Assembly (NCBI GenBank): GCA_973895155.1
Contig: OZ316898.1
Location: 7,303,079 to 7,367,078, forward strand
Direction of reading: 5' to 3'
From: Marsupella aquatica
Lineage: Eukaryota; Plantae; Marchantiophyta
DNA length: 64,000 bases
Shown here: one piece after another, positions 7,832 to 31,936 of the stretch
Numbering within the stretch: the first letter of the stretch is position 1
Layout of the letters: each line of letters starts with the position of its first letter
Made by a program: the position numbers and the translations under genes
Notes under the pieces: generated by a model
What the model was told of the DNA's origin: nothing
What the model saw: only the letters and a program-made list of their open reading frames with translations
Databases searched by the model: none

Positions 7832-8626
7832 ATGGCCTTGCGTGGGGACAACGCGGTTTATGGATGTTTCACAGATTCGGATGTTGTTCCGGACGGCTAT
7901 CGCCCTAAGTGCCCTTCATGCGGAGAAAAACATTGTTGGTAGGTGCATGACATACGTATCGTCAGGTCCGAGGCGTAGGTTTCAGATCTGGTCAATTCGC
8001 GCTCAAGCATCGATCGAACTTGTCCGATTAAGCCAGTTCGACAAGTTCAGCGCGAAGTACTCCCAGCTTGCATTTTTGATAATTTAGTTTACAAGTCCGT
8101 CCTTTATTTGTGTTCTGCATAATCCCGTAGTTGTCAATTCAGCTCTAATTGATTCTGGCGCCTTCCATGCGTGCAGCTGCGATGTTAACGAAAGTTGCGG
8201 AAACGGATTTGGCGAGGGACCGTCTTCGGAGAGTTGTTCAGTTCATATGGGACAAGGTAATTAAAGTTCCCGCGTTTGCTACGATGGGACTATCGATTAA
8301 ACGTTCGCTTCATTATTTGCATTCTTCAAATTAAATGTGGTTTTGTTCAAGAGATCATTGTGGATCTTCGAGCCACAGAATTGTGCGAGGTCTTCGAATC
8401 CGCGATCAGTATAGACATCTCTGATATGCTAGGCACGATCCGCGGGCTCGAGAAGTTTTTGGCCGTTCTCGACTTTCACAAGAGAGAAAACAAGGCTCAA
8501 GATGTACGAATGATCGAAGTTGTCCCATTGAATCCAGGTTTTCCATGCTAACAAGTGTTAATTTCATATCTGTATGATGTAGGCTCGTGGCATGGAGATG
8601 TTGGCGGCACAGGTGTCGATCAGTGA
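7832..8626 (+). CDS. Small Cys-motif protein, paralog A, 76 aa; exons 7832-7938, 8177-8256, 8583-8626: MALRGDNAVYGCFTDSDVVPDGYRPKCPSCGEKHCCCDVNESCGNGFGEGPSSESCSVHMGQGSWHGDVGGTGVDQ
   Basis: Manual splicing: TG|GTAGGT…GTGCAG|CTGC and CAAG|GTAATT…ATGTAG|GC give one open frame. GYRPKC matches GRRPKC of paralog C. Intron 1 is at the same codon and phase as in paralogs B and C. Confidence 0.7.
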
Positions 8627-8772
8627 AGTAACCGAGCTTGGAGGCCAATTCACTCACTATGACGGGTGATCACATGAATCAATGATGATGGAGGCTCGAG
8701 GTCTCTCGTCTGGTTGAAATGATATTAGATTACGTAGGGATCTAGATTTCGTTCACATGTTGAAAGCCAGAC

Positions 8773-8854
8773 ACTGCAGGTAGATCGACACAGGCTATGA
8801 GAGTCCTTGATGGACTGCAGGTAGATCGACACAGGCTATGAGAGTCCTTGATGG
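8773..8854. repeat. 41-bp perfect tandem duplication
   Basis: ACTGCAGGTAGATCGACACAGGCTATGAGAGTCCTTGATGG x2. Confidence 0.9.
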
Positions 8855-10081
8855 AGCTATGTAATTAGTAGTACAGCTGTACACTCCACCACCAATTCCT
8901 CTATATGTAGATTTCTAAGTCCGACTGAGGTGCAGTGTGCATTCACTGTTAATGTATTTGTCCATAGATACAGACCACGTGGCTACTAGCTAAGTATCTC
9001 GATAGTTTCCGTCGATTACCACTATTGACGTTTTCAACAAACATAATGAACAGCATGTATATTTGGAAGTGATCTTCAGTATTTCGCTTGCATGATCGCC
9101 TCAACAGCCTACTATTGGTTTTGGTTTCCATGAAGTTGCTAATTTCTCTGACTCCTGAGGCCCTGTTGCGTCACGGGCTACGTGACTCGATCCTCTTCCT
9201 TAGTCCCTCATGTGACCTGCCTCGATCAAGTCGTCTCTGAATTTGACGACCTGAACTTATCTTGATCTGCATGGGTTCTAGCGATCTAAACTTACTCTCC
9301 ATTCATTTGTTTCAAGTTGTGTTCAGATCTTTATATTTGCACTTTTTCCAGATTTTGTAACAGCTCGCAATTTGAGTCGAGCTTATCTTGCGAAGCGATG
9401 TTTCTGATATCGATGAAGCAAAGGCTAGGTATTCTTATTGATTCGAACATGATTCTTAAGACCCACAGCGGTATTACAAGATGATGAGGGGCAGAGTTCT
9501 TGACGCGTGTACTATGAGGAGTGTTCGATCACCAATATCAGTGCAGCCCATGCATTAACGCACGGTGCATCCTAGTTTGTACCACTGCATTGATGCACAA
9601 ATTCAAGGGCAACATCTAAGTCGAGAAGTACCAATCAGATCCTGTAAATTTCGCGTCGTCAAATTCAGAGACTGCGGACCGTGCTTTTGCCCAGCAGAAG
9701 CTGAGAAGACCATAGCGACTACAAGACTCATTTGTCAAGGACCACGTGTACAGTTAGAATTTCGCCCAACTTCCACTGTCGTTGCCCACTGTGTGTAGCA
9801 AATCAGATTGAAGGAGATGATCGCACCTTGCGAATTGTCTGGCCTGCATTAAATTTTCTGTAGGCCCTTGTCTGCACTTCCGACAAGAAATAGTTGAAGC
9901 CTACATCCTTCAAAGAGCACGAGAATATAGCTCTAAACTGCCCCAGGGCCCTCTGGCTTGCTGATGCTTGTAGGGTACGATTGAGAATACTATTAATGTC
10001 GGTAGCACTCGAGTTTCGGACAACGAAACATGAGCGCGATTGATCAATGCTGCCTTTTCCGACATTTCGTGATTCTTGTAG

Positions 10082-10781
10082 CGGTCAAATCAGTACCCGG
10101 TTTGGACTAGTACCCGGTTTGGACTTGCCCGGCAAATAGACCCTTCGGAGGCCGTCAACCGGTAAGTCGACACCCGGCCTCTCCCGGTCTCGATCCCCCG
10201 GTCCCAGTCCGGCCCAGCCATGACCTCCCGGCCCCATCACCCGGTCTCGTTTCCCTTTTGTTTCCTCCGTCCCGGCCCCGGTCCCCGGTCCTGGCCCGAG
10301 CACATCCCCCGGCCCCGGGTCCCTGCTCCCACATCTCCCGGCCTGCGGTCCCGGCTCGGACATCCCCCGGCTCCCGGTCCTGGCCTCCCCTCCTCACCCG
10401 GCCCTCCTCACCCTCCCTCACCCTGACCCGGGCCTCCTCACCCTCCCCTCCTCCCCTCCCCTCCCCTCCCCCCACCCGGACCCGGCCCAGCCCGGCCTCC
10501 CCTCCCCTCCCCGGACCCAGGCCTCCTCACCTTCCCCTCCTCCCCTCCCCTCCCCTCCTCCCACCTGGACCCGGCCCGGCCCCGGACCCGGCCTGCCCCT
10601 TCCCGCCCCCGGCTGCTGTTTGGCCGGGTCCGGGTCCGGGAAGGGGCCGGGCCGGGGAATAAGATGGAATATGCGTCAAATAGAGGCATTTTGGTCCGGC
10701 AAATACCGAGTTTACGTGCCAAGCAACTCGGCAAGTTGCCCATCACTTCAAACCCGGAATCAGTAGCCTTAAGTTTGACCG
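10082..10781. mobile_element. GC-rich low-complexity insert with short inverted termini (putative non-autonomous DNA transposon)
   Basis: CGGTCAAA (10082) and TTTGACCG (10774-10781) termini; core 10175-10660 is C-rich with many CCGG and CCCT(C) repeats. No TSD found. Confidence 0.4.
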
Positions 10782-13258
10782 GAAGCCCAGAAGAACTTCT
10801 TAGAAAGCACAAATTTTCTTTTGTCCGTAATCTTTTGTCGGGAACTCCTACAATATATCGTTCTAATAACTTATCGGTAAGTTGTTGAGCAGTTCCTCAT
10901 ATCGGGATAATTACATGTCTGATTGATATTACTTAGAGTATCCAAGATCCAATGTGTTGGTGGTAGGTTCTGTTACCTTTTCTGGAAGACTCAAGACAGC
11001 ATACCTAATACAACCAAAACTTACGCGTCAGTGATGCATAGATGGATGGATTCCTCTGACTTAGAAAACCTCCGTTTTGAGCTTTTGATTATCTGACGAA
11101 TCTCCTCTCAAGGTGGTTTAAGGGCCGACGAAATTTTCTATTGACCAAACGAACTAGTCCGATCCTCAAAGAAATTCTCCCGGGGACAGGGAAGAAGGGC
11201 CAGTTTGGAAGTTATGAAGGCCAGTTGGAGGTAACAAAGGCAAGTTTGAGGTTGGGATGGCCGTCTTAAAACAAACACAATGGTCATAATACTCCAGAAG
11301 CTTGCAAATTAGTAGCCCTTCTAGCAGAGAATATATGTTTCATGGTGGTGCAATTCCCATCAACTTTGATTTGTATACACCTAAATGCCGAACTCATGTG
11401 TCAATTGTGTTGCCCAAGGAAGGGAAAGGAGTTGAAAGGGAGAAACTTGAGCAGAAAGCGGATGCAAGCATTCTGCGATTCTGCTGCCACGGGTTAGAAG
11501 AGCTCTTACCATCCGTACTATTTATGCCCCCTAAGGACTAAGTTGCCATATCTCTAGGAGTTTTGTTGATGAATAAAAAATACTTGTTAATAATTCACAC
11601 TGAAATCCCTGCAAGATTCTAGACTTTGTATCTTTTGTCTTTTTGGAAGCGAATGCCCAGCACATGCTATGCGAGTCAGGGCAACTTGAGACTTGTTCTA
11701 CTTGTCTCCTGCTAAAGAAAGTATAATTTCAACTTGCATAAAGTTTGGGTTTGTATACAAGTGGGAAGACAGGAGAAAAATAATAATGAACAATAGGAGT
11801 AAAAAATCTTCCAGGGATTGCAGTGTTATTGCCCTTCAAATTCAACATGTCTTATTGATTAAAAAGTGAGCCTCCATCAGGTTGGGCTTATGACATGTGT
11901 TACTTTGTAAGTTGTCACGTGAATGTCGATTATGTCCATGCACTAGTAGCTACTGTACTACTTAGTTATCTTAGTATCTATTTCATTTTGGAAGTTTGCG
12001 ATTAGTAAGTCTTGCTAAGTATTGTACCTTAGTTCACAAAATCACGCATTCCTGGACTGTTAGAATAATTTTTTGCAACTACCAGTTGAATGTGGGCCAT
12101 TCCCAACATTATTAAATTAATAAACTGTCTACTGTCTGCGAACCTTTACAGTTTGACCTTTAAATTTTTTAATCATTTTCCTTTCCTTTTATTATTAGAA
12201 GTTGTGTGCATTCCTCTCAAATTAGGTGGAGGCTGGACTATGGTGACCTTAAAAGAATTCGAACCCAGGAATAACCATCCTACTGTACCTTGTAGCAACG
12301 TTTTCTAAAGGCCTTGCTAAAAGCCAGTTTCCCCTAAAACAAACATGAAATCATTGCTTTACAAGTTGTCGGATAGACATCCTTGGAGTAGTCAGTCGCT
12401 TCGAGACTAGTATTCCTTTGGTTCCAGCCGAGAGTTAATTGCTCAGGTGACCCACATCGAAGATCTTTCTTATTTGGGACCTCAGTAGTGGAACTCTTCA
12501 TCTTGCCGACGTGCCTTAATTGCAAACATATTCAATGGCGTGCACCACACGTCCATAGCTATGACACCATTCAAAGCGACAAACCAGGCAGCCAAATCCA
12601 ACTGCCTATGACAAGCGCGGGCTGCGCCACCGATCTCACGGCACTATAGATCACTGTCAGATCGGTGTCTGGTCGTGGAGACAAGCAAAAAAACAAATTC
12701 GGTAGCCAAGGGTTGTCGCACTGAGTAAAACGAACGCCTGCTGTGCATGTAGAAAAATTTGGACGATCCAGCAAAGCAATGGATAGGAGGCGGACTTCGC
12801 CTCATTTTCGTTTTGCATCGATCAATGAGTTGATACTATTGCCTTTGCTTGTTTGATACCAAAACTATACCGCGAACTAAAGCAGCTCGCAATTGCAACC
12901 CCACTGGAAACCTTTGAATCTATCAGCACCTGGGTCAAGCGCAGTCCGCCCTTCTTCGACCAGTCAGCCTTCCCTTCAGCGTTTCTTGTGACCACCCGAA
13001 TTCAGATAAGAAATACTTTGAGCATCTTCTCCTTCACACTCACTGAACATTCGCCACTCTGGCGAAAAAGTAAAACCCTGAACGCTACCACCGAAAGCAA
13101 AGTAGAAGACAGAAACAAATCTAGAATCTCTTGACTAACGGGAGTATTGTGATCACTGGTGCCCTTGAATCCTGTGTACGCGCACGTGCATTTTTTTGCA
13201 TGAAACGAGAATTGGGACACTATTGAGCACGTTGCATGCTAAGAGCTAATGTACGTAG

Positions 13259-13879
13259 CACCTTCTTTTTTAGTGGCGAAAATTCGCCAAATTCCAGTTC
13301 TCCCAAAAATCTTTCGCCACTTTTGGCAAAAATTAGTTACTAGTTTTTGTGTGATTGGTCACTTTTGTAAAAAATTACGGTATGCTTAGCCAGTGTTGCA
13401 CCTAATTAATACAGGCCCCATTACCCAGAATTTAAGAGTCAACCTAATCTAAATCTAGGGGGATCAAATCTAGGGAGATCTAACTGTCAAGAAAAATAAT
13501 TGAAGAGTGAATCTTTAGAGCATCTTCTCCTTCACACAGTCTTTACATTCTCCGCTCTAGCCAAAAGTAAAATCCTTAAAAAATAGGCTGCTGGGTAGGG
13601 TGAGGACCAGCTTATTTTTCGGGTTTTTTTAATTTTTAGCCAATGTGGCAAATATTTGTTTTTCTAAGGGAGTAGATCCTAGGAATATTCTCTATCATAT
13701 GACCATCACACATCCCTAGATTTAAGGAGGGTCGTTAGATTCTGGCTAATGGCCCTCCATGATATGGTGGAAGAATGGTTAACGGTGTTAAAACAATCTA
13801 GCAAATATTAGCCAAAAGTGGGGAACATTTTTTGGGGAGGTGGAGTTTGGCTGAAATTTGCACTTAAAATATGCTGGTG
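13259..13879. mobile_element. MITE with degenerate CACC…GGTG terminal inverted repeats
   Basis: Left end CACCTTCTTTTTTAGTGGCGAAAATTCGCCAAATTCC…CCACTTTTGGC resembles the reverse complement of the right end. Related pieces at 1566-1860 and 44020-44193. No TSD seen. Confidence 0.55.
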
Positions 13880-15624
13880 AGGCCCATACCATTCATTTAA
13901 TTAACTACAGATTTCAATGCTACACCCACTTTACTCATCAACCATTAGTATATGTAATCTTGTCAATTTTTCTGGTCATTTTTTACTACTTCTCTTCATT
14001 TTACTATCAATTAGTTCGTGGACCCCTTGGCTAATAAAATCAGGGGGAAGAGTCAATCTGAGCCGTCTCCATTTCTTATCTCCGGAAATCTCGTCCGTCC
14101 ATCATAATGGCCAATCTATGGCTCAAAAGAAAGATCTCAAATAGATCTATGGATGGGTTCTGTCAGTTTTGCAAATGGGTTAATATTTTTCAAATGAAAA
14201 ATTAAACAAATCCAAGCCTTCCTAGCCGTCGATTTTGTTGATTTTATGATCTTTGCCGTCCATTTTGTAATGCCTCTAGAAATCTTATTCATCCATGTTA
14301 GAAGGCGAGCTAGGGTGCAAAACAAAGATCTCAATGAGATCTACGACTGGGTATTTTTTGTTTTGAGAATGAGTAAATAGTTTTGAGTATAGAATTCGAT
14401 TAACTTTCAAGATTCCAGCCATTCCTCCTCCTCGATCCTGGGTTTCTATGTGCTCTTCCCAGCATTAATGGCCATACAATACGAGAGGTCCTTACATACT
14501 GGGAGTTGCGGTTTAACAAGGAAGTTATCAAGTTAGTTATTAGTCATTATTTATTATATGAAAAATACTTTTTTATAAATCTTTGAATTTAAGTTTTAAA
14601 ATTGGAAATGTAACTAAAATGGTTACATAGTGATAGTTTTAACCGTCTTGCTCTTTGCATTTTCAATGTTTTTACTTTTCTTTTTACGGCACGGTGTCCC
14701 AAAATTTACACCCAAATTGACACAAACACGAATGAAAACTATAAGTTTGATCTACAAAACCGACGACTCTTGTTTGTTGCGGTTGTTGTTGACGTGGCAC
14801 GCTGTGGTGCCAGGAATTTTGGAAAGTACCTCTAGTGGGGTCCGTAAATACATTTAGAGGTTTTCTGGTCATTGTTGAATTTGTGCAATTGGGTTTTATT
14901 GTTGGATTGTGTGCAATGGGGTACACTAATAGGGTATACTGTCTTGGGAGGGGGGAGGGGGCTATGTACAATAGCTACTAGAGGACAAGTCATTATAGAT
15001 TATCAACTATTATAATATACTTAAAAACAAGGTATTTTATGTTGCGAGCAAACAAAAGATTTTGATAGCGAGAAAAATGTTATTAGCGAGACACTAATAA
15101 TTTCAAATTTCATTTGCTTTTTGGTGCCTTTTATAGTTTTTTTGTTTTTTCAAAGACTCCAAATGGCTACCGAGCTTGCTAGCAAAAAGGGGAGTCACCA
15201 AAAGGGATGTTACCAATCAGGTAGTTGATAGAGAGGCAGTTGGATGTAGAAAAATAGTGACCATCAGACATGATGCAATAATGTTTTTTGCTCATGCTAG
15301 GAAAAAAATTAATGTTTGCTTGTACGTTACAATTACCCCTTAAAAAATTTGGAGTCTAAAGCCGGGTGTACATAGGGAACAACCCTCTTCAGTGAGATTC
15401 TTTCAAAGATTTTTTGTGTACTCTTTGTTTGATTGATAGGGATTGTCCAAATATATATTTACTTTTGCAATAAAACACAAAATAAGTACATCTTATGAGT
15501 GCTATCTCACATGATCACATTAATTTTGTCTTTTTCTGTCAGTCCTCGAGAAGTTTCCAAAGTACTAAGTTGGCAAGAGAATCTTTCGGGGCTTGCGAGA
15601 CTTTTGGCTTTTTCCATAGAGAGT

Positions 15625-18425
15625 TTATATAACACAGTGCCCAAGGGCAAAAATGCCAACTGGGAGACAAGATCCCAAAGTCAAAGCAACCCACTGAACC
15701 CCGGAAAAGAGGGGAAAGGGCCCGAAGAAAAAACAGGCCAAGGGGTCCCTAACTCAAAAACCAATGCAAAATTAACCTAGAGAGGAGTCTTGAAAGCTAA
15801 TGTACCCTACTGCATGGAGAACTGAAAAGCCTAGTAGAGCTCCGGAGTAAACCGCAAAGGAGGGTCCCGAAGCAGACCTGACGGGAGGCCCTAAAACCAA
15901 CTGCCTCAGCCCTACGAAGTAAGGTGAAATCCTGGGCCCGTCGAAGAGCCACAAACATCGCGCTGCCAAAAAAAGGCGGTAAGGACAGAGACAGGGGGGA
16001 AAGGCCACCTCTCAATACAATAAAAGCAGAGGCCTGCAGGACTGGTCGAAGGTAGGGTGGAGAGCACCAAAAACCTCAAGGGCAAAAGGGTAGAAAAGAT
16101 CCCCCCGAGTAGCGAACTGCATAGGCCTCCTCCTTGAACCGGGCCGCCTTGGCAGCAGCATGGCCAGGTACGTGGGCGGCAATTGCGACATGGCTACCCC
16201 CGATCGGGTCAGCAACCACCACATCCCCAAGAGCACGAACCCCGGCCCTAGAAAAGACCAGATCCGCCCCCGCCGGTCAAGAAGACCATCCCGAGGGGGG
16301 AGGACATGTCGTTCCCGGGGTTGTTGCTCCATGGCAACATGGTAACCAGAGTCCCTGGCAATGGCAGCCACTACATCCCGAATATCATCATGAGTGGTAG
16401 TCCTCTCATTCCCATGGGCACACCTAAGAATATGAACTTCCAACGAATCCAACGACGCCCCACAAACACAAGTGGGTTGGCCAAGGAGGCAAGGGTGAGG
16501 AAGTCCCAACCAAAGGCACAATAAAGTGGCAGGTGAAGTGGTAAAGAGGAAGGAGCTCATACAAAAGGGGGCCCACAAAGGACTAGTAGACAGCCACACT
16601 CCAGAACCGACTCCTGCACAAGAAAGGAGGCGAGCCCAAACCGAGTCAGAAGATGTCTCCGAGAGCATGCTGGAAAGGGTGTGATGATGCATGTGGTCGG
16701 AAATCACCTGCTGGACACGGTCCGGACTGTCTAGAGCCACCTCCATGAAGTTCGGAACAACGGCCTGCATAACCTCGGGCAGGAGTGAACGGATCTGGCA
16801 AAGGCAAACCTGGAATGGGAGGACACCCTCCTCAACCCCCATGACGTGGTCAAAGAGGATAAGTTGGATATCCACAATGAAACGAGAAGCAAGGGCAAGG
16901 GCCACCTGTGCCCAACTCCTAAGGAACGTGCACGGGGTAGTGGAAACAGCCAAGGAAATACCCATGCCACCGCCGAAAGGCGGCAGGGCAGCCAGCTGAG
17001 CTGCAAGAGAACTGTCCTCTCTGTCAAGGGCTCCAGGGCCGATAAGGTGTCCAAAGGTCCCCATCACAATGGTGTCGAAGGATGAGAGCAAGGACAAAAA
17101 CAAGGGAGTGGGTGGAACAGTCCCGAGAAGGTATGAAGGGCGCCGGACAAAGCACTAGGCCAAAGTCATGAAGGAAATCGGGATGTTGCTAAGTGCCACC
17201 AGTTGGTCGATGTGAAGAACATCCTGAGATAATGTCACTTGCAAGAACTCATGGACAAAAGCATCATCCCCGAATGGGACCCCCAGGACCCAAATGCCCT
17301 CCACACAAAGGGGGACACCAAGGGGAGGGGAGAAAGAATCTGGAAGAGGATGTGGAGACCAGACCCCTCGGGGGTCTCACTATATGGGGACCTTCCCATC
17401 GCCTGCGACGTTTTTAGGCCTCGGACCCCCTAAAATGTAAGAAAAAAATATTATTTTTTAACCCCTATAAAGTTGGAATATTCTTGGAATATTCTAAAAA
17501 TTGGATTAAAAAGACCCTAATGTTCTTATAAGTCTCAAAATTGAATTTAAAAGATCCTATTGTTCTTCTACAAAAATTCTTAAGTCTTCCCTTAGAACCA
17601 ATAAAATGACCCTATCCTTTGTCGCACGTGATATGCCATTTTTGTGGAAGTGAAACCCCCGAGCCAGACCCCGCACTTCCAAGACTCCACTGAAAGGCTA
17701 AGAAGTGCCAACTGGTCAGCAAAGTGGAGATAAGCATCCCCAAGGACTGAGGTGGGCCCCACCAGATGAGTATCATCAGCAATGGACGGAAACATGCACC
17801 CAGGAAAGGCAAGTGAGGATCCCCGGAGAGCAAGAAAGTGTGCCATGGCAAACAAACCCCCACCGATGGAATCCCCCTGCCGAGTTCTGAACTCAGAAAG
17901 AATCATTGTGTAAGACCCAAGATTGAGTTGGTCAGGATAGAACAAGAGGGCAGGGGTCCCATAGAAGGCCCGGACAAAAGGAATGAGGGAGGCAATCTCC
18001 CGCCCCGCCAACATCACGCAACTCCTAAAAAAAAGCACATTGAGAGACATTGTTGAAAGCATTGGCCATGTCAACCTGGATGACTGCCCAATTAGGACGG
18101 ATATCCACGATCGAACACAGGCCATGCACAACACTCTCACAACCCCCCAAGGTTGCTACCCCAAACTGATGAGGGGAGAGGGGAGAAGCAAAAGGTGATC
18201 GGGTCTAAAGCGGGGTCTGAAGGCAAACACAATGACTGGCCATCTGGTAAAGAATCTCAGTCACCAATGGCAAGGGGTTGCACCCCAGACGGCAGGCCAC
18301 AACAGGGGGAATATGGGCCCCAGCAACATGAGCGCAGATCGACCTGAAAAAGTTGAGAGAACCTTGACGCAGAGTAGTCAAAAAGGAAACAGTCCCTCAG
18401 GTACTCAAACATCATCCCCGAGTGA
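15625..18425 (-). mobile_element. 5'-truncated, disrupted non-LTR retrotransposon with RT and restriction-like endonuclease (CRE-like clade)
   Basis: RT motifs across frames: GVQPLAIGD, HQFGVAT.GGCE, QVDMANAFN, TRQGDSIGGGLF, SIADDTHLVG, GIWVLGVPFG. C-terminal CVCG…HILRC, THDDIRD and FYPFALEVFG fit the zinc knuckle, RHD and PD-(D/E)xK nuclease region. Frameshifts and stops present. The 3' boundary is approximate. Confidence 0.85.
17367..17663. mobile_element. 297-bp MITE inserted in the retrotransposon RT; 15-bp TIR, 8-bp TSD (hAT-like)
   Basis: TIR CTCGGGGGTCTCACT / AGTGAAACCCCCGAG; TSD CCAGACCC at 17359-17366 and 17664-17671. Removing the element rejoins the RT frame (CGVW|SPHPLP). Confidence 0.9.
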
Positions 18426-18643
18426 GATTTAATTAAAGACAAAAGTGGGTTTGTTTTGCTTTTATTAGACTCCCTATAGTTTTCTTTTGGAAGTGAAGGG
18501 GGGGAGGTGCGGGTGTGCGGGGGGGGAGAGGGAGGAAAGGACCTCGGAAGGGACTGGCAAGGGCAGGAAGAAATAGAAAAATGGGAGAATCAAGGACAAA
18601 AAATGAATGATTTTCTCCTTAGTACAAGCATCGTGCAACCACA

Positions 18644-18861
18644 CTCAGGGGTTCTCACTATATCAACTGAGGCTACCCATCATTTGGGCGGTTTTAAGCC
18701 TTAGACCCCCTGAAATGTCAGAAAAAATCAAATGTACCCCTATACACTCAATATTAGATTTAAAAGGCCCAAAAATTCTTTCATTTTTCTTTATTTTTTC
18801 CCTTGGAACCTATAAAAGAACCCTAATATTATAACTATTTCTATGGATGTGAGACCTAGAG
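18644..18861. mobile_element. Second copy of the same MITE family (218 bp)
   Basis: Degenerate TIR CTCAGGGGTTCTCAC / GTGAGACCTAGAG; TSD CAACCACA at 18636-18643 and 18862-18869; internal similarity to 17367-17663 (GACCCCCT.AAATGT.AGAAAAAA). Confidence 0.85.
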
Positions 18862-21800
18862 CAACCACACTTTGACCTCACAAAGCCCCGCTACCATGCC
18901 TTGTCTCTCTTATGCTCTGTGCCACCCTCGCCCATACCCTTTCCAACAATATGGCTATCCAATTCAAAATTAAAATGTAAAACTAAGGCCAAGGTTTATA
19001 AAATTTGTTAATTGCATGATTGATCTAAACATTTAACATTAATAAAACACTATTAAAAAAACTACACTTTTAGTGAAGGCCAATCATGAGACCAAGCTCC
19101 CAATATTTTTTCTCCCCAAGACCCAACTTGCTTGAGGTGCCTTGGGGGCGCGCATCTCTATTAGTCTTGTTGTTTTCCCTACCCACTCATTGTTCCATAT
19201 ATTTCTCTCTCATTGACAATATAGAGTTCTTGCCCAACCCTTGCCCGTACTCTCACTACTATTTGAGCCTTCTATATATTCCCTATTTTGGTGTTGACTT
19301 TGAACTGCATTTTCACTACATAAGCTTATGCGCAATGACAACACTTTTTATGATGAATGGGCAAGAACAAATGGCCTTTCATTGAAATCCATTTTCCCAG
19401 TTTGATCTATCATTCCACCAAAAATCCTTTAATCCCTCTGCCCACCCTCACTTATTGCTAGCCTTGTATGCCTTGGTTCACAATTTGTGCACTCCAGTAC
19501 GCCTCCTTTCCCATATAGTGGGCGAGAGAAGAGGGTGGCCATAACAAAGGGAGAAAGATCAAGGGTGTGAGAAAGAGAACGAGATTAAATGGGAGAGGGG
19601 AACAAAGGAAACAATTATCCAGGGTAGGCAAGGGAGAAAGATCAAGGGTGTGGGGAAAGGAACTAAATTGAGATTACATTGGAGAGGGAAAGAAGGAAAC
19701 AATTATCCTGCAAGTGGACTTGCATCTGGAACTTATTGCTCTCTCTATTGAACCTGAAAATGAACATTATCAGCTCGAGACTGAGCCAAGATCGAAACAT
19801 AGTTGCAGTTTTTGGTGAAAGAGGAAACCGCCATACAGCAGCCGCGTGAGTTTACCGAATTTATGTTTTCGGTTGGCATCTCATGTACTGTTAGTACCTT
19901 GATTATGCTCCGACCCAACTACACTGGAAGGCCGGTAGATAGACTTCTCTCGATGGGGCGAGAGGCACACTGCAGAAAAAGAAATGCATGTTTGGAAATT
20001 CTGTACTGGGACCAGAAGTGGCTGGGAACTCCCGGCCTGACAGTATAGTCCATCCATAAATTAGGGTAGGCTTTTAAGCCACTGTTTACACTCTCGAGGA
20101 CATCCCGTACTTTAGCTGCGAGCTGCTTGCTCTTCACAACACCACTCTCTTGGTAGAGGACATGAATTACCATGTGGTCAACGACAGTATGACCACATAG
20201 CCTTAGCCTTAGCCTGCATTAGGTCAATAGCCTGGCGATTCGGTCCTCCCCTTGCAATTTTCACATGTAAGTTCCAGGAAGTTTTGAAATTGCACCGCAC
20301 AAGTCGACATAATTATGCTGAAGTGGTTTCGCAGCTGTCGGGGTTGTGGTTCATGTTACGGTTGTGTTCAGTTATTTTCAATGATGGCTAAAATAAACGT
20401 CAACGTACTAGGTCTTCAGACAAGAAAACATGTACGATGTTGCCAAAAGCTATGTGATTATTTCTGCTTTCCAATTTCAGCCTTTCCAACCTGTAATTGT
20501 TTCCTACTTGTGAACACGATTTCGGAACCCGAACTTTCAAATCAGTGTGGGCCACTACTGCCGGATTGAAATTCAGCCACGAATGCCATTTTCAAAATCA
20601 CAATGAGAGTGCGTGAAGGAAACCCTACCAGGCTTGCGTGAAGGGGTGGAAATAAACATTTTTGTCACTGGGCCCACTTCTGTTTGAATGAGAAAAGAAC
20701 CGAAATCATATTGTCAAATAAACGCTCCATTGACACGTAATAGTCTATTCGCCAGGCCAGTTCGAGCAAGGTTATTGACGCAACCAGATTATTTTGATCA
20801 ACGACAATCTCTTCACTCGAGTAATTCAAGCAAGAGACACGTCAATTTTCTTGGGCTGGCGATGAAATTACTGCTTCCGATTGGAAAGCAAAGAACGGCA
20901 GAGGTCGATTTTCTAGAAGGTTTGATTGATAGTAATACCGGCCTTAACCTGGTTATGATTCGGGATAGCAACGTGTGTAACTTATGCAATTACGTAATTG
21001 AAGAGAAGAGGCGTTTACTATGGCACACGTTTTGTTAGCCGGGTTCTTCGGTTGGTTAACAACGGGGTTACCAATTTCACACAGATTCGTTAAGTTTGTC
21101 TTCTCATGATAGCTCTCGTTCTTGTTCTTCCATTTCAACATTTCAAATCTGGATCTACGTACGTATGCAAACGAAGTGAGAAGTCATACCCTGGCTTGGG
21201 TTTTTTGAGTTGCCCTCACACCGCCAGAGAACAATGTCCACCTTCTCTGAAATTCCTTCTTTGGGTTACATGAGACGTTTACAGGCAGAGGGTGGCAGAA
21301 TTGGGCCGGTGCGGCTAGCTAGAAGGTACGACCAACTAAATTCAAAGTAGGGAATCATATCTAGGTTAAGAAGGTTTTGCGTTAATTTGTGATTCCAGAC
21401 CCTACATTCAGCTCACGGTAGCCTACAACTCAAGCTGTTGTGTTCTGCATTTACACATCTAATTGGATCGACAAATGAGTTACGCGATCCGGTACGTGGC
21501 TAGATCTTCTAGTTTTGCATCTCCTACATTCATTTAGATGGGATTTTCAGATGCTCTCTTTCCTCGCATTGCCCTCTCCGTGGCGCTGCTAGTCAATCAG
21601 TCGTCGACCCGTTACTTCACTTGACGTGTGCCCTTAGATGGACAAGTACGCGAAATGCACAATTGAATTGAACAATTTTGGACTGAGCGAAATACCAAGA
21701 ATCTTGGTTGTTAAGGTCCACAGCATGTTCACTCTGGCTTGAATTGACGATTCAGACGAGCTACCGCGTGAAAGAGGACTCGTGCTGCCCAATCGTATAG

Positions 21801-22365
21801 CCTTTCCTACAGAATTCAACGTACAGCGGCCATTTGCATGGCAGCAAATTCGTTGAGGCAGTGGGCGGTGCTCTACTCCAGCAACTTACGTGCCGGAGCA
21901 TTCCAGCCGGGATGGTCCTTGATTGATCCCACTGAAGAATTTTCCGGAAAGTATAAAGGCCTTTGGATCAGCCCCAAATGCAGTAGTTGTCTACACCGCA
22001 CTCTCACAACCGTGTGGATAAACTCGAGAACTTCTAAGTGACTGCTGATTTTGAGTTCCAGTTGTGCTGTTTGGTGGCGAGCCCCAACTTTGTCATATAA
22101 ATTGCTAGTGTGTATTCACACTGTGGTCTCTCTAGACGAATCTGTGTGACTAGCCTGAGCTTTATCATAGAAATTACTAGTGTAGATCGAGCGTCTGGTT
22201 TCTCTAGATGAATGTATGAAAAATTATTAGGGTCCATTGAGCCTTTAGTCTTTCTAGATAAATTTGTGGTGTCCATTTAACTTATGATCTCTTTAGTCTC
22301 TCTAGATAAATTTGTGCTGTCCATTGAACCTATGGTCTCCTTACATACATAGTACACATAAATTT

Positions 22366-23048
22366 GTGAGATTTATTGAATTTATATATTTTTTATATTA
22401 ATATTTTAAATTAATGTTTTTCAAAAAATTATAATTAAATATTATATTTTTTATTTTAATATATATTAGTTTTATTTTTTAATTACATATAATTTTAAAA
22501 TTTTATTTTTAAAATAAAATTTACAATATTTATTGAACTTAATTTTAATTTAAATATTATAATTAAAAAATTACTTAATAATATTTATATTAATAATAAT
22601 ATTTATTATAATATTTAAAATAAATAATATTTTTAATTATTTAGAAGATCTTGAAATTAGAGATTCTATCATATATTTGTCGAATATTTTTTAATTTTTT
22701 ATTTAATTTTTTAAAAATATATTTAAATAAATATTAATATTTTATATTAAAAAATTATTCGACGTTATTTGAATTCTAATCATGAAATCTTTTTAAATAA
22801 TAAAATATATTATATTTTTTAAATTTATTATAAAACATATTATTATTATTTAAAATAAATTTAATTAATATTTTAATTATTAAATTAAATTTAAATTTAA
22901 GTTCAATAAATTATTGTAGATTAATAAAAATATTTTCATAATAAAAACTAAATTAATATTTTTGTCACATTTTAAATTAAATTAATAAATTTTTTAATAA
23001 ATTTTTGTCTAAAATTTTGTATATAAATATTTATTATACAAATCTTAC
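22366..23048. repeat. Extremely AT-rich decayed inverted repeat (foldback element)
   Basis: Symmetric anchors TATTGAACTT (22531) / AAGTTCAATA (22899) and GTCGAATA (22679) / TATTCGAC (22756) share a centre at ~22720. Very few G or C residues remain. Confidence 0.7.
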
Positions 23049-25695
23049 TAGAGTTGACTTTATTGGATTGATTTTTCAACAGAAAAAAAAGTTAAGAATC
23101 TAGAAAAAAAGAATGTTAGGAGATTGACTTAAAAATGTATTTTTTCTCTCAAATAATTGTATAAGATTGAACTAGAAACATTCTTGTGATGTGTGGATCC
23201 CACCTTCCTGATGCAATTCCAATGCAATTCAGACTGACACCTGGTGACCTGAACCCTTGGTGATGTCATTATTCTGGTGACCTGAACCCCAGGTGATGTC
23301 ATTAATTGTCATTTTTATCATAGGTTTTGATGTCTGTTTAGGGGCTTTAGCAAAGGATGACATGTGCAATCTTGTACCATATGATTTTATCTCAAATTGG
23401 ATTGAGTAGCTATAATTGTAGTGCTCCAAGCTTTCATGAACGATTGCTTAGTGATTGGCTTGACCAACAACCAACAACTTGATTCCCACATGTTCATCAT
23501 GCCTCCACTCAGATTCGCAAAACCAGTCTGCTTTCCTAAAAGCAATGGGTTTTGCTGAAACTTCAGCTGAGGCTGCCACGTGGAAGTTTGAAGAGATAGC
23601 GTTTACAGTGAAACTATTGCATCGGGTATTGCATTGCACGAGCTTCGTATTCCTTTTGGTATGGGAGTCAGCTACTCTCAAATTTGGCTTGGGATCTGTC
23701 TGTATTCAGTGTTCATGCCAAAAAATCCAGACTGAATCGCTTTTCAGTTGACTAATACACAAACCGCTACAACAGTGATGTGGGTGCACTGTAATTTCCG
23801 GATATGGCCGTCCACTAATATGTTCAATTTCCAATGTGCTCAGCTCTGATAGAAAAAGGCAACTCGTAGTACACGTTTACATCGACTGCGGATGAGCTGT
23901 TCGTGAGCATGATCAACGTCGAACAACTCAGCATGGAGGAGGTAATCAACGATTCAGAAAAAGTTTGAGCGCACCAGCCTGTTACAAGACGAACCGAGAA
24001 CAGGAATTAAATCCAATTCGAGCTTGAATTTCCATATTGTCATATGTCATTGAACGAAATTGACGAGGTGACGAGGTAGATCGCAGGTAATCTGAAAATA
24101 ATCTGCGGGCAGAAAGTTTTATTTGATGATCTTAGTTTTATTTGATGATCTGATGAGTTTTCAAGAGCCTATTTGAACAAACAGTTCGGCGTGGTTCCCA
24201 AAAAGTGAAATGATCTAAGGAGTCTTTGCCTCTCTTAGATGGAGAGAATCGAGGAGAGCCTACAAAATCATGACGTATTGAGCTTGTCAATCATGCCGAC
24301 CTTGTTGGATTACTTAGGTAGTCTTAGTAACACGTGTCATCAAAGTAAGTGATATCTGCTATGAGAGGCCAGGTTTTAGTGTCCCCGATATCGACACGAT
24401 TGGAGAATCAATTTTGCGGCATGCAAGCCTGGAAGTTAGTACAAGTCCATAACATTTAATTAGGATTTCCCAAGGACAACTGTCTTATACACATACTGAC
24501 TTGCTATAGCAGGTTTTTCAGCTGTGTTTTCACCGTTGCAAGATCATCCAAGAAAGTATTTGAACGTTTCTGAAGAACTTTGTTAGTCTTCTAAAGGTAT
24601 ATTATTTTCAGATTTTGAAATTACAAATCTTATGAAAATCGCTTGGTATGAATAACCTTTCAGTCCCTCCTGCAGCTTGTATATTAATTTTCCAGATGTA
24701 TAACTGATCTCTGTAAAGACATTTCCTATTGTTTATTTCCCCGCTTTGTTTTAGTGCCCTAGAGCCGGCACAGCCACACATATAGAGTGTTGTTTATCCA
24801 CTTAGCTGACAACACAGAACGTATGCTCCCACTGCAGGCTGTTAAGGACCTTTGCATTCCTTCAGCATGACACGGAATTTGCTCACAACTTTTGTACGAA
24901 TCTACAGAGCTACTGTAGCTGTGGAGCCTCTTTCTTTTTGCTAAATTGAATGCCCACTATCACACTCTCCAGGTCGAGTACTTGAGAGTCGGTTGGACCT
25001 TCTTTGACCTGACTGTGTTCTTTACACGAAAAAGTCTGTCGGAACTGTCATGTTACAGAATGAATAGTGAGGCTGCGCGCAGCGATGATGTAAGGTCTCC
25101 ACAGTAAGCCGACAACTGAATTAGGAGCAGCTCTACAATAATTATTATTTCTTGAGTTGCAGATATTTTAGTGTAATCGGATCCAAGAATGCGCTCTGCC
25201 ATCCATACCTCGTACGAATGCTGACGAATCTTGCAACGACACATCTCATTTTTAAAGAGCGAAGTTTTGTTTTGTCCTAGACACTTGCGTGCTAAAGTAT
25301 GCCAAAAGGAAAAGGAAAATTCAGGAAGGGCGAGCGCGGTCCTACAGTAACCCGCGATTCGTGCATGCGCCGCAGGATCGACTAAGGATCATGCTCCTTC
25401 TGCACCAATTGTGGTTGACAATCTTTTCCGCAGCAGCATCCAATCCTCTCACGTACGGTCAGTATAATTAAGTTGCTGTGATCCACCAACTTAATCCGTG
25501 CTTTAGCATCTCCTTGTGGGAATAGAAGTGTTGATGTCGACTTCAATGTGCTAGCTTTGTTGACACCAGGGACTTCTGCTAGCTTCAGCATTTGTTGACC
25601 TCGGTGACTATCGAGCTTCTTCTCCGGTCTCCTGGAAGAAGCTGACCATCGCTGAAAATCGCTCTTTCCGCAGTCCTTGTGAACTGAATCGATAG

Positions 25696-26039
25696 ATGGC
25701 CCGGCGGTTGGGAGATGAGAGCCCTAGAGCTGAAATTCCTAGGACTGTGGCAAGCGAGCCTCGTGAAAAATGTTCCATCTGTGGAGACACAGATTGCGTG
25801 TGAGTACAGTCTCAGATGAGAGCGTCAAGCTTGAAATTAACGGAATTAAGTCTTCAAACAATGGCAGTTGTTCTTTGTTCATGTGTTTAGATACCAGCAT
25901 ATACGAGTCATTAATTGATAGGAAGAGTGATCGATAACTGACCCGGCCACTTATACATGCAATCTTATATGCATGATGCAGCTGTTACCAGCCCGAGGAT
26001 AGAAACCGGATTCAGATTAAGAAACGGCGGACAAGCTAG
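25696..26039 (+). CDS. Small Cys-motif protein, paralog B, 53 aa; exons 25696-25799, 25982-26039: MARRLGDESPRAEIPRTVASEPREKCSICGDTDCVCYQPEDRNRIQIKKRRTS
   Basis: Consensus donor GT|GTGAGT and acceptor ATGCAG|CTGT. The motif DNA (ATCTGTGGAGACAC.GATTGCGT|GTGAGT) is nearly identical to paralog C exon 1. Predicted 3'UTR intron 26090-26331 has branch point TACTAAC. Confidence 0.8.
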
Positions 26040-29000
26040 CTCACTCTTTCTAAATTTTAAAGCAAGCTTAGCGGGAATCGATGGATGAGGTACGGCTGGC
26101 ATCAAACTAATTCAAATGTTCTGGCTCGAGCGATGCACTTGGTTAGATTCATTTGCAAACTCTTAGTACAGTGCGCTAACGTACTAGTTACATGATGAAC
26201 TGACGACTAGAGAGATCATCCGACCTAACAATAGAAGGCGTCATTTGAATGTTGGTTCTTTGATAAGCTATGATAAGCACTGCATTATGTCAGCCAAACT
26301 TTGCAAGGTACTAACAATTGAGTGGCTTCAGGTGCTTTGGTGCAGCATGCGGCCAATATCCGGTTTCTGTACGTACTGTTGATTATAACTAGTAAGGCTC
26401 ATGGACGGTCTTCTCAGGAATTCTCCTCTTCACGGATCCAAACAAACGTTCGATCGACAGTAGCTTGCGAGAAGTCTGTGAATTGGAGAGGCCAAGCTTG
26501 TGAAAGGTGGATTCTAGCTCGGGTGGTCGGGAGGCGACTAACCTAAAGTTGTGTTCAATGTGAACCAATTCGAACCAACATGCTATGGCCTACTTCATTT
26601 ACCATCTGTAGTGATAACTTAGTTCTCTGGTTTGAAAGTAGTGACCAGTACGTATTGTAAGATATGCACTTTCCCAGATGGTGGGCTTGTAGGACAATGG
26701 TACATGTTCAGGGAAAAAGTCGCAGTCCGCGTCTCCTAACTATTCAAAGGCAAAACTATCGAAATCAATTATTTGGGTATTGATGAATTCCGGCTTGAGT
26801 TTTTGTGACCGATGATGGCACGGATGGCTTCACTCGCGTTCTTGTCAACTCAAGGAATTGTGTCCATTCAATCAAGACAAGGGATTGTGAAGCACTATTA
26901 GTCTTTCGCGTACGTTCTCTCACTGCACACACATTAATCAACATGTTTATTGAATACCTCAATTTCTGCCTATTAACTCGTTCCATGAAATGAATGTTGA
27001 CAAATTTGCACGACGAGACCGACTTGGAATACATTATGCTTTTGTACATGATTATCTGACACGAAAGTATTCGTTGCGATCTAAGCGACTCAGTTGAACT
27101 ACTAGACCGAAGAAACAAGTCTATCATTTTCTGGAAAAACAATCATTCCGGATACTTGGCCTGGGAAATCATTGATCCACCGATGAAACAATCTGTCCTG
27201 TTAAAACACTATCAGGCAAGGCTCAGATGAGATGACTGTCTTGCAAAACTTTGCAGAAACTCTAGAATCCTTGGTCCCTGTTCAGAAATCATCCATGTTT
27301 TGGGCTTCATGCTATGTACCCAGGAACTTCAAAAATTTCCAGAAACCTACGCTCTTGTAATTATCATCTCTGAAGTAGATCCATTGCATCACTCAGAAGC
27401 GTATTGCGATTCAGACAATAACTCAAGTAAAATCTTGCCCTCTGTTTTTGGCTTTTAGGTCATCCATTACTAAAACATTGTATCCCATTCTACTACCATT
27501 TAGTTTTGAAAATCTCTCAAAGTCCCTTAAAATTTCACATCACAAAATTTTCTTTAAAGATTGAAAAACAATGACAGGTACAAAACTGCTTAGTATATAA
27601 TTGGGGCAATTGTACAAATTTATGATGAAAAAATGGCGTATCTTAGAGAAGCTGTGTCTATGCGATCCATAAATTTACACCGCTGACCAGACGTGTACTG
27701 CCAGTTTGGCTACGCATCTGGCAGAGGTGCTCATCTCCAACCTTGAAATCGAGTCTTCATCACAGTAACAGAGAATCCAGGAGATCCGCCCGACTTTTTA
27801 GTCTACTGCGGTCAACTTCTGGGTCAATTGAGGTTACTTTGAAAGCTAGCTGAACTATCTTAAGTACATAAAACTACTATAAAGTAAATTAACGCAGACT
27901 TTGCAACTAGATTCTCGCTGCAGAAAAACATATCCTTGATTTCGTTCGTAACGGTTACATCTCGTCTTTACAACGTATGATTGTAATATAAATTACATAC
28001 GACCTCATCTAGCCCGCGGTTCAGATGGACTACATGTCCCTTACAATTTAGTAGCTCGGATCCTTGCTATTGTACACAGTGAGTTCTTTCCTCCCGATTC
28101 GCGAATCTCACGAATAAAGAACTCAAATCCCCGCGAAAAATATTCATATCTTGTTTGCTTTTGATCGATACCCAACTCGAAGCAATGTCTGACAAAATTC
28201 TGATACCTGCATATCTGAACTCCATGTCACGGCAAGCAAATTGTGTGGAATAAGACGCATTCAATACCTTTGAAAGCAACGACGTAAGGTAGATACGTAC
28301 TGGATCACACTTGCACTACAATCTCTGCAAACTAATTTTGAGCTAGTCTCAGCGAGGGTGGCTGGTACGTGTCCCCTAGCGAACTGACATCCTGGCCCTG
28401 CAAATTTTACACGATTTCAAACGTTTGACATAAATATTTCATGTTCCATTAATTATTTGTAACATGTCTGCATGTCGCTGGAGAGATGAACCCTGGATTA
28501 ATCGTTTCCTTGATCGAGGGCTACTTTGATCTGCAGCTCCGATCTACAGGTGCGACAGCATAGTTCGTAGACTAATGGTCCTGGTGGCCGCCAAGCCCAC
28601 GCGCGTCCCTTGTCTATTCTTACAAGCAACATCTGGCCAGTTTCACTTGTCGAGAGAGATTGATCTTCTGTTCCCCAGGTTCTAAGAAATTGAACGGTAC
28701 GTGCAAAATTGTCAATCGGCCAGAATTTGTCCGCTTCTCTAAATCCGGTCATCTGAATTGAGTAGATCATTACCGTCCAATTTGGATCACTGATAGACAC
28801 ACAAGTGTAGTTAGTGAGCGGTTGAAGTCTTAGACGTTTACTAGCTTTTCTGGATGATAGTTGTTGTGAGGTATGGGCCTCCCCATTTTGACTTCAATTC
28901 TCACCACGCGCACCACCCTCAATTCTGCACGGGTTTGTAGCGCATCGGGTTGTAAAATGCTCGACTTTGGGCCGTACGTGAACTTGCAGGTAGAAATCAT

Positions 29001-29682
29001 TATGTCATTCTATATATCTGAATCGCTTCATGTACAAGCCAGCTCTTACTACACTCTTCGTTCATCTCGTGCTCGTTTGCGCTTTAGCTTGCATTATTAA
29101 CAAGGGCCCTCATGCCCAAAAAGTCTTCGTTATGCGACCACGCGATGCTGAAAGTGTTTCTCCCAAGCTTGAACGCACTTGCAGTCCCGCAGTAGCTCGA
29201 TCTACACTTGCGTGCAAAAGTGCATTCAGAGAAGAACATGAGAAAGTGCGTGCAAAAGCTGGAGGACCACTAGTCCACTCATACATAGTTGCCCCTGTCG
29301 ACTACGGACAGAAAAAGCTCTCGCTCCTGGGTTTTTCTTTGCATTGTGGGGAGTATCCACATGTGTGCTGATTTTGTTACACTGGTTCCGTGTGGATTCA
29401 CGCAAACTACGATTCATGTTTCATTGACAAAAGGGTCTTGTACGTGTCGTTGAAATTTACAGCACCCCTTGCTTACTTGTTTTCAAAGAGTGATTTTCGT
29501 TTGTGCTAGTGGAAAACGTGCAGTTGCATATATGGAAAGAAACTACATTGCGAGCGGGCCTAGCTCGGCGGAGGCCGGTACCGTAGTAAGTGCCGTAGGT
29601 TTCCAGCAATTGTTGGACTCTAAACTTGTCCAGTGTCCTGAGGGAGTACCTAGAAGTTGCAGTTCCCTGGCTGCATGAGACC

Positions 29683-29689
29683 TATATAA
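29683..29689 (+). promoter_or_regulatory. TATA box upstream of Cys-motif gene C
   Basis: CCTATATAAG about 250 bp upstream of ATG 29939. Confidence 0.55.
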
Positions 29690-29938
29690 GCACAAGTTGT
29701 TTGATAAGCTCGATCACACATTAGTACTGTGTTGAACTGTGCCAGCTCCTCTCCAGTTTACATTTTCTTCAATTTTTGACTAGCTTTTCTATCAGAGGAA
29801 AGGTTGCAAGTGCGAAGCCCGATCCGAGTGCTCATCAAGGCACGCCGTTCCCCCAAACTCACAGCGCCCAGACTTGCCCAATTCAATTCGCAGCTCGCTA
29901 AGTCCCTCTGTGTCGGATCTTAGCCTCAGTCTACAGAA

Positions 29939-30856
29939 ATGGACTGTTGGGTGGGAGATAAACGTCCTTCAACGGAATGTCTTATTGGACACGGGCGTCG
30001 CCCAAAGTGCTATATCTGTGGAGACACCGATTGCGTGTGAGTTTTAGACACTTCGATAGTAGACCTTCAATTTGATACCTGTAGAACGGATAGTGTTTCT
30101 TCTGCTGACTTGTGTGGGATAGACTTATTACTCAGAAGTGCGAGTTGCTCATAGCCCAATTGCACTGCGCCGTGCATTAGATGAGACTATGAATTTCAAA
30201 GATCTTATTATGTCCTATACGTTTGCAGCTGTCCGCAGCCGGAGCACAACGACCACTTAAGGAAATTGGCACAGTGTGTAGGAGATGAGCCTCCTCCAGG
30301 GTGTCCCATTTGTGGAGACACCGATTGTGTGTGAGTTCCTTCACGAGCTTAGATCAGAGCCTGCGACCTGTGCATTCCGTGTTGTATCAAAATACTCCTT
30401 GAGTGACGGTCCTGCTTTCATCCAATATTTTTACGAATTTGATATCTTGTATGCAGCTGTCCATCGTCCGAGCACACAAGATTGCGTAGGGAAACGGCGA
30501 TCCGATGGATGACAAAAGAGCCGCGTCCAAATTGTCCCGTTTGTGATGATACGGACTGTGTGTGAGTTCAATGTCACTGACAACGGAGCGACAAATTTGA
30601 TATATTTTCAAATACTTGATATATATATGCATATATAATTACGGTCTTGCTTCTCCTCACATGTCTTGCGTACGTATTAGACAGATATATTTAACAGTTA
30701 AGTCTTTCACTTTAAAAGCATGCGGGATTGCAAATGCAGATTTCCGTTGTTATGTAGTTTTTGAGCACCCAGCCCCTAATTAAAGTTCGGTATGTATGCA
30801 GCTGTCCTCCGTTTGAAGATGACGGATTCTTCAGGGAAATGGCCCGTTTCATATAA
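29939..30856 (+). CDS. Three-repeat Cys-motif protein, paralog C, 119 aa; exons 29939-30036, 30229-30330, 30457-30561, 30802-30856: MDCWVGDKRPSTECLIGHGRRPKCYICGDTDCVCPQPEHNDHLRKLAQCVGDEPPPGCPICGDTDCVCPSSEHTRLRRETAIRWMTKEPRPNCPVCDDTDCVCPPFEDDGFFREMARFI
   Basis: Three identical GT|GTGAGT donors and three TGCAG|CTGTCC acceptors give a 360-nt open spliced frame. Differences within the motif are largely synonymous, while the introns show no evident similarity. Predicted 3'UTR intron 30881-31109. Confidence 0.88.
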
Positions 30857-31936
30857 ATTGAACAATCTCCTTTAGAGGAGGTACGTTCAGATCAATGCTA
30901 ATTCTGTTTCAACGTTCGACTCGATATGTTTGATTCCTTTGCAATCCACTGTGTAGCGAGTGGAGAAACTAGTTAGTACGACCCGAATTGAACCCTACAT
31001 CATTATTTCTCTAGATGTTTTAAGAGGGCGTCATGCATGCAGCTCAGACGAATTAGAGAATTTGTTCATTCACAATGTTACTAATTCTGGAATGTCTGTC
31101 TGGTTGCAGGAATTGAGCTGCTTGCAAGGATTCTATGCAGGGGTTCTTCATTTTTTTGCCGACAGGCATGCAAAAAAATAAAGCAGGCTTTTCCATGGTT
31201 TTCGTCGACACATATTCCCTTCACACGAGGGACGTCAAACTTCTGTCCTACATGAATATTGCGAAAAGTCTGTAAACTTGGCTTTTTATCTACGGGGTTT
31301 ATTTTGTGGGTGCTTTCGGCGGGCACTCACATGTGTTTTAGCCAACACCATACGAGTAGTCCTCCGAATTTATTCTAGTAGAATGTAGTATATACTCTGT
31401 ACATTCCTCGATATGGGGATTAGGTCTACCACGTATTCTACTCTCGCTGTTTTCTGAGATGTTGGAACAAAGTAGACAAGCTAGTACTTAGCACCAGACG
31501 TGCTATCTACCATATATACAGGGCTTGAAACTGAAGACTAAATGCTTTACTTAGTTTTCTAATATGTGATGACATGTACTGTCTTCAATTCGTTTGTAAT
31601 GCTGCGTTTTAACAACACAATATCTCGTATTTCGTTGTTTGCTTTCTGTGAGACGGATCGAGTATGACATTGAATTGTACTTATCCACTGGGACTAAATT
31701 AGTCTGTGACGCGTCATGATGCATCTTCCCCTAATTGTCAGTGAACGTTTCGAGACGGGATTCAGTCCTTAACACGTGTAGCCCGGCCACACCGCAACTG
31801 GGAGTCAAAGAGTGGCTGAAGAGAGACTCGGTGCTTCCAGTCATGAGCAGGCCCAACTTCTGCCCAATTGAGCGACAGTGGCTGGATTGACTAGCTAGAA
31901 TATTTGCTTAGAAATCAAAATCGGCTTTTCTTCTTG

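Follow-up and report, generated by a model that had tools for sequence, protein, structure and literature searches.

A plausible family of small Cys4 proteins encoded by micro-exon genes in the bryophyte Marsupella aquatica

Cysteine-rich regions (CRRs), in which four cysteines sit within a short peptide, are known from fungal iron sensors, transcription factors of the HapX type. In Candida Cap2/HapX, CRR-A reads Cys-X2-Cys-X4-Cys-X-Cys and CRR-B reads CGFC-x3-TP-C-[IV]-C (PMC6070739), and in Aspergillus HapX each four-Cys region behaves as a unit; the regions cooperate in binding [2Fe-2S] clusters and determine the iron-response state (PMC4232046, PMC12390756). PMC12390756 credits Rossetto et al. 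2024 with peptide mimics of HapX regions that bind the cluster in vitro. Here we describe three loci, A, B and C, in 64,000 nucleotides of DNA from Marsupella aquatica (Marchantiophyta; GenBank assembly GCA_973895155.1, contig OZ316898.1, positions 7,303,079 to 7,367,078 of the forward strand). This whole stretch is referred to below as the window, and positions are counted from its first letter. The loci carry five copies of a Cys4 motif, each interrupted by an intron. They are a plausible new family of small proteins, built around a putative Cys4 metal knuckle, for which no homology to known families could be detected. The proposition that A, B and C are genuine coding genes belonging to a single small Cys4 family, duplicated locally and probably holding one metal per unit, is in our judgement evenly balanced.

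A scan of the six frames of the whole window recovered exactly five copies of C-x2-C-[GD]-[DE]-x2-C, on the + strand only and within 23 kb of each other. In each copy the full motif runs from C-x2-C-[GD]-[DE]-x2-C through a split codon into C-x3-E, and four Cys and one Glu are invariant across the five. The Cys4 unit spans 11 residues, C-x2-C-G-D-T-D-C-V-C, and is followed by P-x2-E. At the DNA level the motif was found 5 times against 0.06 expected by chance in 64 kb, and a stricter DNA pattern that includes the splice donor (…TGYGTGTGAGT) was found 4 times against 0 expected. Motif codons differ synonymously between copies (TGC/TGT, GAC/GAT, ACA/ACC/ACG), an N-terminal M-x3-4-G-D is common to A, B and C, and an EP[RP]/RP segment recurs upstream of the first Cys. 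A sequence-only reading of the window had proposed five copies in three + strand loci, with these invariant residues, synonymous variants and recurring segments; the scan bore out the number and placement of the copies, and the remaining features are present in the sequence.

Gene A (7832-8264, + strand) begins with an exon at 7832-7938 that contains the ATG, M-x3-G-D, CPSCGEKHC and two bases of the split codon. After a phase-2 intron of 238 nucleotides (nt) at 7939-8176 (GTAGGT..GTGCAG), the second exon (8177-8264) completes C-C-D-V-N-E and encodes a tail of 23 amino acids (aa) before TAA. Gene B (25696-26039, + strand) has the same layout: exon 1 (25696-25799) carries the ATG, M-x4-G-D, EPREK, CSICGDTDC and the GT of a split Val codon, the 182-nt intron (25800-25981, GTGAGT..ATGCAG) is in phase 2, and exon 2 (25982-26039) completes V-C-Y-Q-P-E and adds a basic tail (KKRR) and TAG. 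Gene C (29939-30856, + strand) contains three motif copies, C1 to C3, distributed over four exons. Exon 1 (29939-30036) carries the ATG, M-x4-G-D and CYICGDTDC plus GT, exon 2 (30229-30330, 102 nt, symmetric) completes motif 1 with CPQPE and opens motif 2 with CPICGDTDC, exon 3 (30457-30561, 105 nt, symmetric) completes motif 2 with CPSSE and opens motif 3 with CPVCDDTDC, and exon 4 (30802-30856) completes motif 3 with CPPFE before a short tail and TAA. The three introns of gene C, at 30037-30228 (192 nt), 30331-30456 (126 nt) and 30562-30801 (240 nt), are all in phase 2. Every coding exon is shorter than 110 nt. None of the three spliced models has an internal stop and each terminates on a stop codon, giving predicted products of 64 aa (A), 53 aa (B) and 119 aa (C), 236 codons in total. 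The lengths given in the sequence-only reading, 76, 53 and 119 aa, were right for B and C and wrong for A, which comes to 64 aa with that reading's own junctions.

In all five copies the donor sits two bases 3' of the third Cys codon, with the sequence GT|GTGAGT in B, C1, C2 and C3 and TG|GTAGGT in A, and the acceptor, TGCAG|CTG[TC], lies 126-240 nt further on and restores an in-frame (V/C)-C-x3-E. The predicted junctions (7938/8177, 25799/25982, 30036/30229, 30330/30457 and 30561/30802) are exact GT..AG pairs in phase 2, and all starts, frames and ten splice sites are intact in the three genes. It had been claimed that a phase-2 intron falls at the same codon, between the third and fourth Cys, in every copy and that the four-Cys site exists only after splicing; the junction coordinates are exact in five of five copies, and each copy is indeed cut by the intron. 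The shared position can be explained by exon duplication followed by gene duplication, and the dependence of the four-Cys site on splicing follows likewise. The family would thus have originated by local tandem gene duplication together with duplication of a symmetric phase-2/phase-2 exon within gene C, which would place an intron at the same codon of every motif copy.

This arrangement has consequences for splicing. Because the GTRAGT-type donor lies in phase 2, retention of an intron would lead to an immediate in-frame stop (xxG-TGA or xxG-TAG). In gene C each cassette exon closes one Cys4 site and opens the following one, and a full motif is restored in frame whether exon 2, exon 3 or both are skipped. 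One could imagine bryophyte modular metal- or Fe-S-sensing microproteins, convergent with the HapX cysteine-rich regions, in which splicing sets the complete sites at one, two or three and never leaves one broken; we consider this idea improbable. If gene C is expressed, its cassette exons would make it easy to test for an effect of splicing on how many metal sites are present.

Judged by comparison of the paralogues, a selected family of small protein-coding genes appears well supported. A repeat search among the copies recovered just two blocks: 57 nt leading up to the donor and 28 nt following the acceptor. Exon pairs among B, C1, C2 and C3 gave local alignment scores of z = 5-11 over shuffles in five of six cases (z 1.3 for C1 with C3), and introns trimmed of their splice consensus gave z of -1.0 to 2.3, scattered around 0 relative to shuffled sequence. 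Comparison of 400 nt up- and downstream of A, B and C revealed no similarity above shuffled sequence, and no common promoter or untranslated-region motif upstream of A and B exceeded the shuffles. Across the 11 core codons of the four close copies, the columns that vary are distributed 2:2:8 over codon positions 1:2:3, and the neighbouring +1 frame, which is open in places (VETPIACEF), is not conserved at the peptide level. The GC content is 0.51-0.55 in exons versus 0.36-0.46 in introns. Taken together, the exon-confined similarity, the third-position bias and the intact frames, starts and splice sites point to ancient duplicates that have been preserved for their coding content. The sequence-only reading had described the introns as unalignable, and their scores are no better than those of shuffled controls; its suggestion of purifying selection on the coding exons of a small paralogous family is upheld by the same three lines of evidence.

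In the core of the four close copies the proportion of synonymous differences (pS) is 0.45-1.2 and that of non-synonymous differences (pN) 0.04-0.17, a contrast that is partly biased, with pN drawn downward, as the motif was picked by amino-acid identity. This bias is one of several points that weigh against three real coding genes. GC content at third codon positions (GC3) is 0.42-0.51 in A, B and C, below the 0.60-0.71 of a permease gene in the same window. Gene A, a distant member, matches the others in motif and intron position but is only weakly similar to them at the DNA level (z up to 3.4). No relative was found in any library searched; the database searches took single exons, in which the first three Cys of a motif are separated from its fourth, because the complete Cys4 motif spans the intron. 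Four sequencing runs from two studies contain the locus, all of them as DNA contigs with no joints at the predicted introns and none recorded as RNA, although the run search used a query of 5.4 kb, a length that can hide small RNA, and so gives no evidence of silence. Finally, in a second organism represented among these runs, at least two non-synonymous variants, at 26024 and 26029, fall in the basic tail of gene B. Reads were aligned on 5,401 letters, and among the 40 of 189 variants listed there is no non-synonymous change in the motif in this organism.

The DNA nature of the four runs, the lack of relatives in the libraries and the low GC3 also speak for a reading of the loci as untranscribed or dead relics, intact-looking duplicated exon fragments without present function. 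Few genes and many transposon relics surround the loci, and a probable decayed copy lies 4 kb downstream of gene C, both in keeping with such an origin. Set against this, the introns can no longer be aligned and differences at synonymous sites approach saturation, yet three starts, ten splice dinucleotides with extended consensus and 236 codons are intact, which is hard to explain without selection. Changes in the core also avoid codon positions 1 and 2, a pattern that neutral decay would not predict. We regard dead or silent relics as unlikely.

The possible decayed sixth copy, assigned with low confidence, occupies 34931-34983 on the same (+) strand and reads KEPSPNCPF*GAYICCV and runs into a GTAGGT donor in phase 2; a TAA replaces the second Cys. 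The match is weak (tblastn E 0.02-0.04). Within the region 34931-35130, about 130 nt downstream, the sequence '...CCAG|GCTGTGAT' is found, one base out of register relative to the CAG|CTGT of the family. A decayed copy at this place would fit birth and death within a tandem cluster.

The second organism (runs X3 and X4), over positions 25600-31000, shows a haplotype nearly identical to the window together with a second haplotype diverged by a few percent and carrying small indels, a pattern suggestive of a heterozygote, of a hybrid or of a polyploid relative of the source organism.

The ends of the gene models deserve separate consideration, as the motif exons could be parts of longer genes. 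In gene A, an alternative donor of good quality (CAAG|GTAATT) lies at 8256/8257, six bases ahead of the stop, and an acceptor at 8351/8352 would connect it, with the frame preserved, to 66 open codons (8352-8551; begins EIIVDLRATELCEVFES); AG dinucleotides are also present just upstream of the ATGs of B and C. However, the putative third exon of gene A at 8352-8551 had no match in Pfam, the ESM Atlas or the protein library, an in-frame stop stands directly upstream of the ATGs of B and C, and there are no other coding-looking open reading frames (ORFs) nearby. The M-x3-4-G-D start common to the three genes likewise argues for true N-termini, and incomplete models of this kind seem very improbable to us. 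The extension of gene A, in frame but given no support by the searches, was rejected, and the short model was kept because the paralogues end soon after their last motif.

The predicted products would be short and hydrophilic, with one (A, B) or three (C) Cys4 units and no signal peptide. No hydrophobic stretch was found: the highest Kyte-Doolittle 9-residue mean stays below 1 throughout, as had been anticipated from the sequence, and is 0.13-0.53 within the first 30 aa. Predicted isoelectric points are 4.6 for A, 8.9 for B and 5.1 for C, and Cys content is 7.5-12.6%. The N-terminal hydrophobic signal peptide required of secreted Cys-rich peptides (defensin, NCR and RALF) is not present in the first 30 aa. 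As hydrophilic proteins without a hydrophobic stretch and with this Cys content, the products would be neither secreted Cys-rich peptides nor metallothionein-like. Plant metallothioneins (types 1-4) are similarly small and intracellular, without a signal peptide, with CxC and CxxC pairs and with introns in the coding region; their Cys-rich domains, at the N and C termini, consist of CxC/CxxC clusters. They differ from the products described here, in which Cys accounts for only the fraction given above and one isolated Cys4 unit occurs per ~35 residues, with a strongly acidic spacer; no exon matched the Pfam metallothionein families at threshold in scans of single exons.

Other small metal sites were compared in the same way. 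The zf-CCHC knuckle (C-x2-C-x4-H-x4-C) resembles the motif in its C-x2-C-G, in a third ligand after four residues and in being a short, self-contained site that is often repeated. In the M. aquatica motif, however, the third ligand is Cys and not His, the fourth follows after one residue and not four, and the knuckle has no nucleic-acid-binding basic or aromatic residues. Neither the ligand pattern nor a match to PF00098 was found when the single motif-bearing exons were scanned with hmmscan at E up to 10. Rubredoxin-like and zinc-ribbon proteins share the CP[IV]CG turn, and the best Pfam signal of all was indeed a sub-threshold one to the rubredoxin-type CPxCG knuckle PF21349 (14.9 bits versus a cut-off of 26.5). 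Those proteins have two CxxC knuckles 10-30 residues apart on a beta-hairpin, whereas a single CPxCG knuckle is present here, with the CxC four residues away. In the redox-switch zinc centre of Hsp33, one Zn is held by a CxC and a CxxC pair and the site is oxidation-sensitive, but those pairs lie ~30 residues from each other within the fold of a chaperone domain, and the two sites are not homologous.

With four invariant Cys in 11 residues and the first pair placed in a CP[IV]CG turn, each unit has the look of a minimal metal knuckle, and a metal-binding role appears plausible from the sequence. Each unit may wrap one metal centre, most likely as a Zn(II)(Cys)4 knuckle built from the CPxCG turn and the CxC pair. 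A site of this kind might play a structural part or respond to redox state, and the linkers that connect the units are unlikely to have much independent structure. The sequence-only reading had proposed an intracellular metal-binding or redox family that might act as chelator, sensor or interaction decoy, roles suggested by the Cys4 spacing. While the motif, the intron positions, the intact frames, the exon-limited conservation and the third-position bias are seen in the sequence, we infer transcription, translation, metal binding and a cytosolic or nuclear location. The cysteines could instead form disulfides or a thiol redox switch with no bound metal, since CxxC and CxC pairs are typical redox-active dithiols and the proteins are small, probably with little other structure. 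Without a signal peptide, however, they would sit in a reducing compartment, and invariant Cys in a cluster this dense, one that includes a CPxCG turn, more typically belong to a metal knuckle. We find the metal-free alternative doubtful and retain zinc knuckles as the preferred form.

Searches for relatives of the motif-bearing exons were negative in all libraries. Pfam hmmscan of all these exons, taken singly, at E up to 10 returned nothing at threshold from any curated family, metallothioneins and zinc fingers included; the sequence-only reading had likewise seen no match in spacing to plant metallothionein types 1-4. PDB sequences, the ESM Atlas and Rfam contained no relative at threshold (PDB profile E >=1), a profile built from five exons found no relative among 1.84 billion representative proteins, and a homologue search with a 49-aa stop-free stretch containing exon 2 of gene C gave no candidate. 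A DNA pattern spanning the exon-intron border had 0 matches in metagenome contigs. Five matches to the profile were set aside as unrelated 'RPxCxxCGK'-type or low-complexity repeats, none of which has the CxC half. Peptide-pattern matches at ten metagenome loci were likewise discarded; they belong to a single family of bacterial ORFs that encode CP[IV]CGEKHCYR without a break in the frame, and represent a chance match to the gene A motif. The permease gene of the window provides a gauge of these libraries: a conserved exon of it has no exact record, and its best library relative is just 68% identical. The libraries therefore appear to lack this species and its close kin, and the negative searches are weak for that reason, so that the lineage-specific character proposed in the sequence-only reading would be conjecture.

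By spacing, the nearest analogue of the motif would be HapX CRR-A, as a functional analogue only. The likeness to HapX/Cap2 and Yap5 lies in four Cys in a short peptide, several units per protein and an intracellular setting. C-x2-C-x4-C-x-C, identical to the spacing of Cap2/HapX CRR-A (PMC6070739), the one match to this exact spacing among the literature searched, is found in all five copies, and CRR-B, CGFC-x5-C-x-C, comes near and ends in C-[IV]-C as the motif does here (PMC4232046). The analogy makes a [2Fe-2S]-binding reading a serious rival, with no homology claimed: the genes would be real, and each Cys4 unit would ligate [2Fe-2S], possibly shared with glutathione or a monothiol glutaredoxin, and report or buffer iron or Fe-S status. 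The binding of [2Fe-2S] by CRR peptide mimics in vitro and the cooperativity of the HapX regions, as presented in PMC12390756, would suit the three units of gene C. The likeness is nevertheless one of spacing alone over 11 residues, and homology does not extend beyond it. CRRs are embedded in bZIP or Hap4-like transcription factors of ~500 aa, whereas the predicted products are 53-119 aa long, have no Pfam domain and are not set in a bZIP or Hap4-like protein. Their acidic G-D-T-D spacer also differs from CGFC, and the organisms belong to different kingdoms. Binding of [2Fe-2S] has been demonstrated for HapX-type CRRs and would be a prediction for the M. aquatica motif. We know of no HapX/Yap5-like system in plants. 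An Fe-S site strikes us as rather unlikely, and we favour Zn(II) knuckles as the working model for the five units.

If expressed, the genes would add to the bryophytes a family, not seen before, of very small Cys4 proteins inside the cell; if not, the loci are no more than a curiosity, a group of duplicated fragments. Plants commonly have small Cys proteins restricted to one lineage, and nothing unusual is needed to account for the shared intron position, which makes the significance moderate. Micro-exon genes of this type escape standard ORF and exon finders because their coding exons are shorter than 110 nt, and paralogue comparison (exon-limited conservation, third-position bias and shared intron phase) can expose them without transcript data. 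The motif is short enough for direct synthetic-peptide tests of Zn, Cu or [2Fe-2S] binding.

Several other features of the window lie around and between the three loci. About 500 nt downstream of gene A, at 8773-8855, is a perfect tandem duplication (41-nt unit, 2.0 copies, 100% identical), and at 10180-10600 a C-rich low-complexity array with CCCGG/CCCCT-type units of ~29-54 nt produces spurious proline- and glycine-rich ORFs on both strands. Between A and B, on the - strand at 16012-18140, two ORFs of 363 and 182 aa have no Pfam match (AT skew 0.30, 52% GC); by eye, this region looks like a retroelement relic. Between B and C, positions 28677-29100 hold a dispersed repeat at which contig depth rises several-fold in four of four runs, with many loose ends, and a form skipping 216 nt (28846 to 29063) occurs in three runs; it is probably a transposon fragment. 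The permease gene is a multi-exon amino-acid permease gene on the - strand at 39980-43217, with PF13520/PF00324 matched in three ORF pieces.

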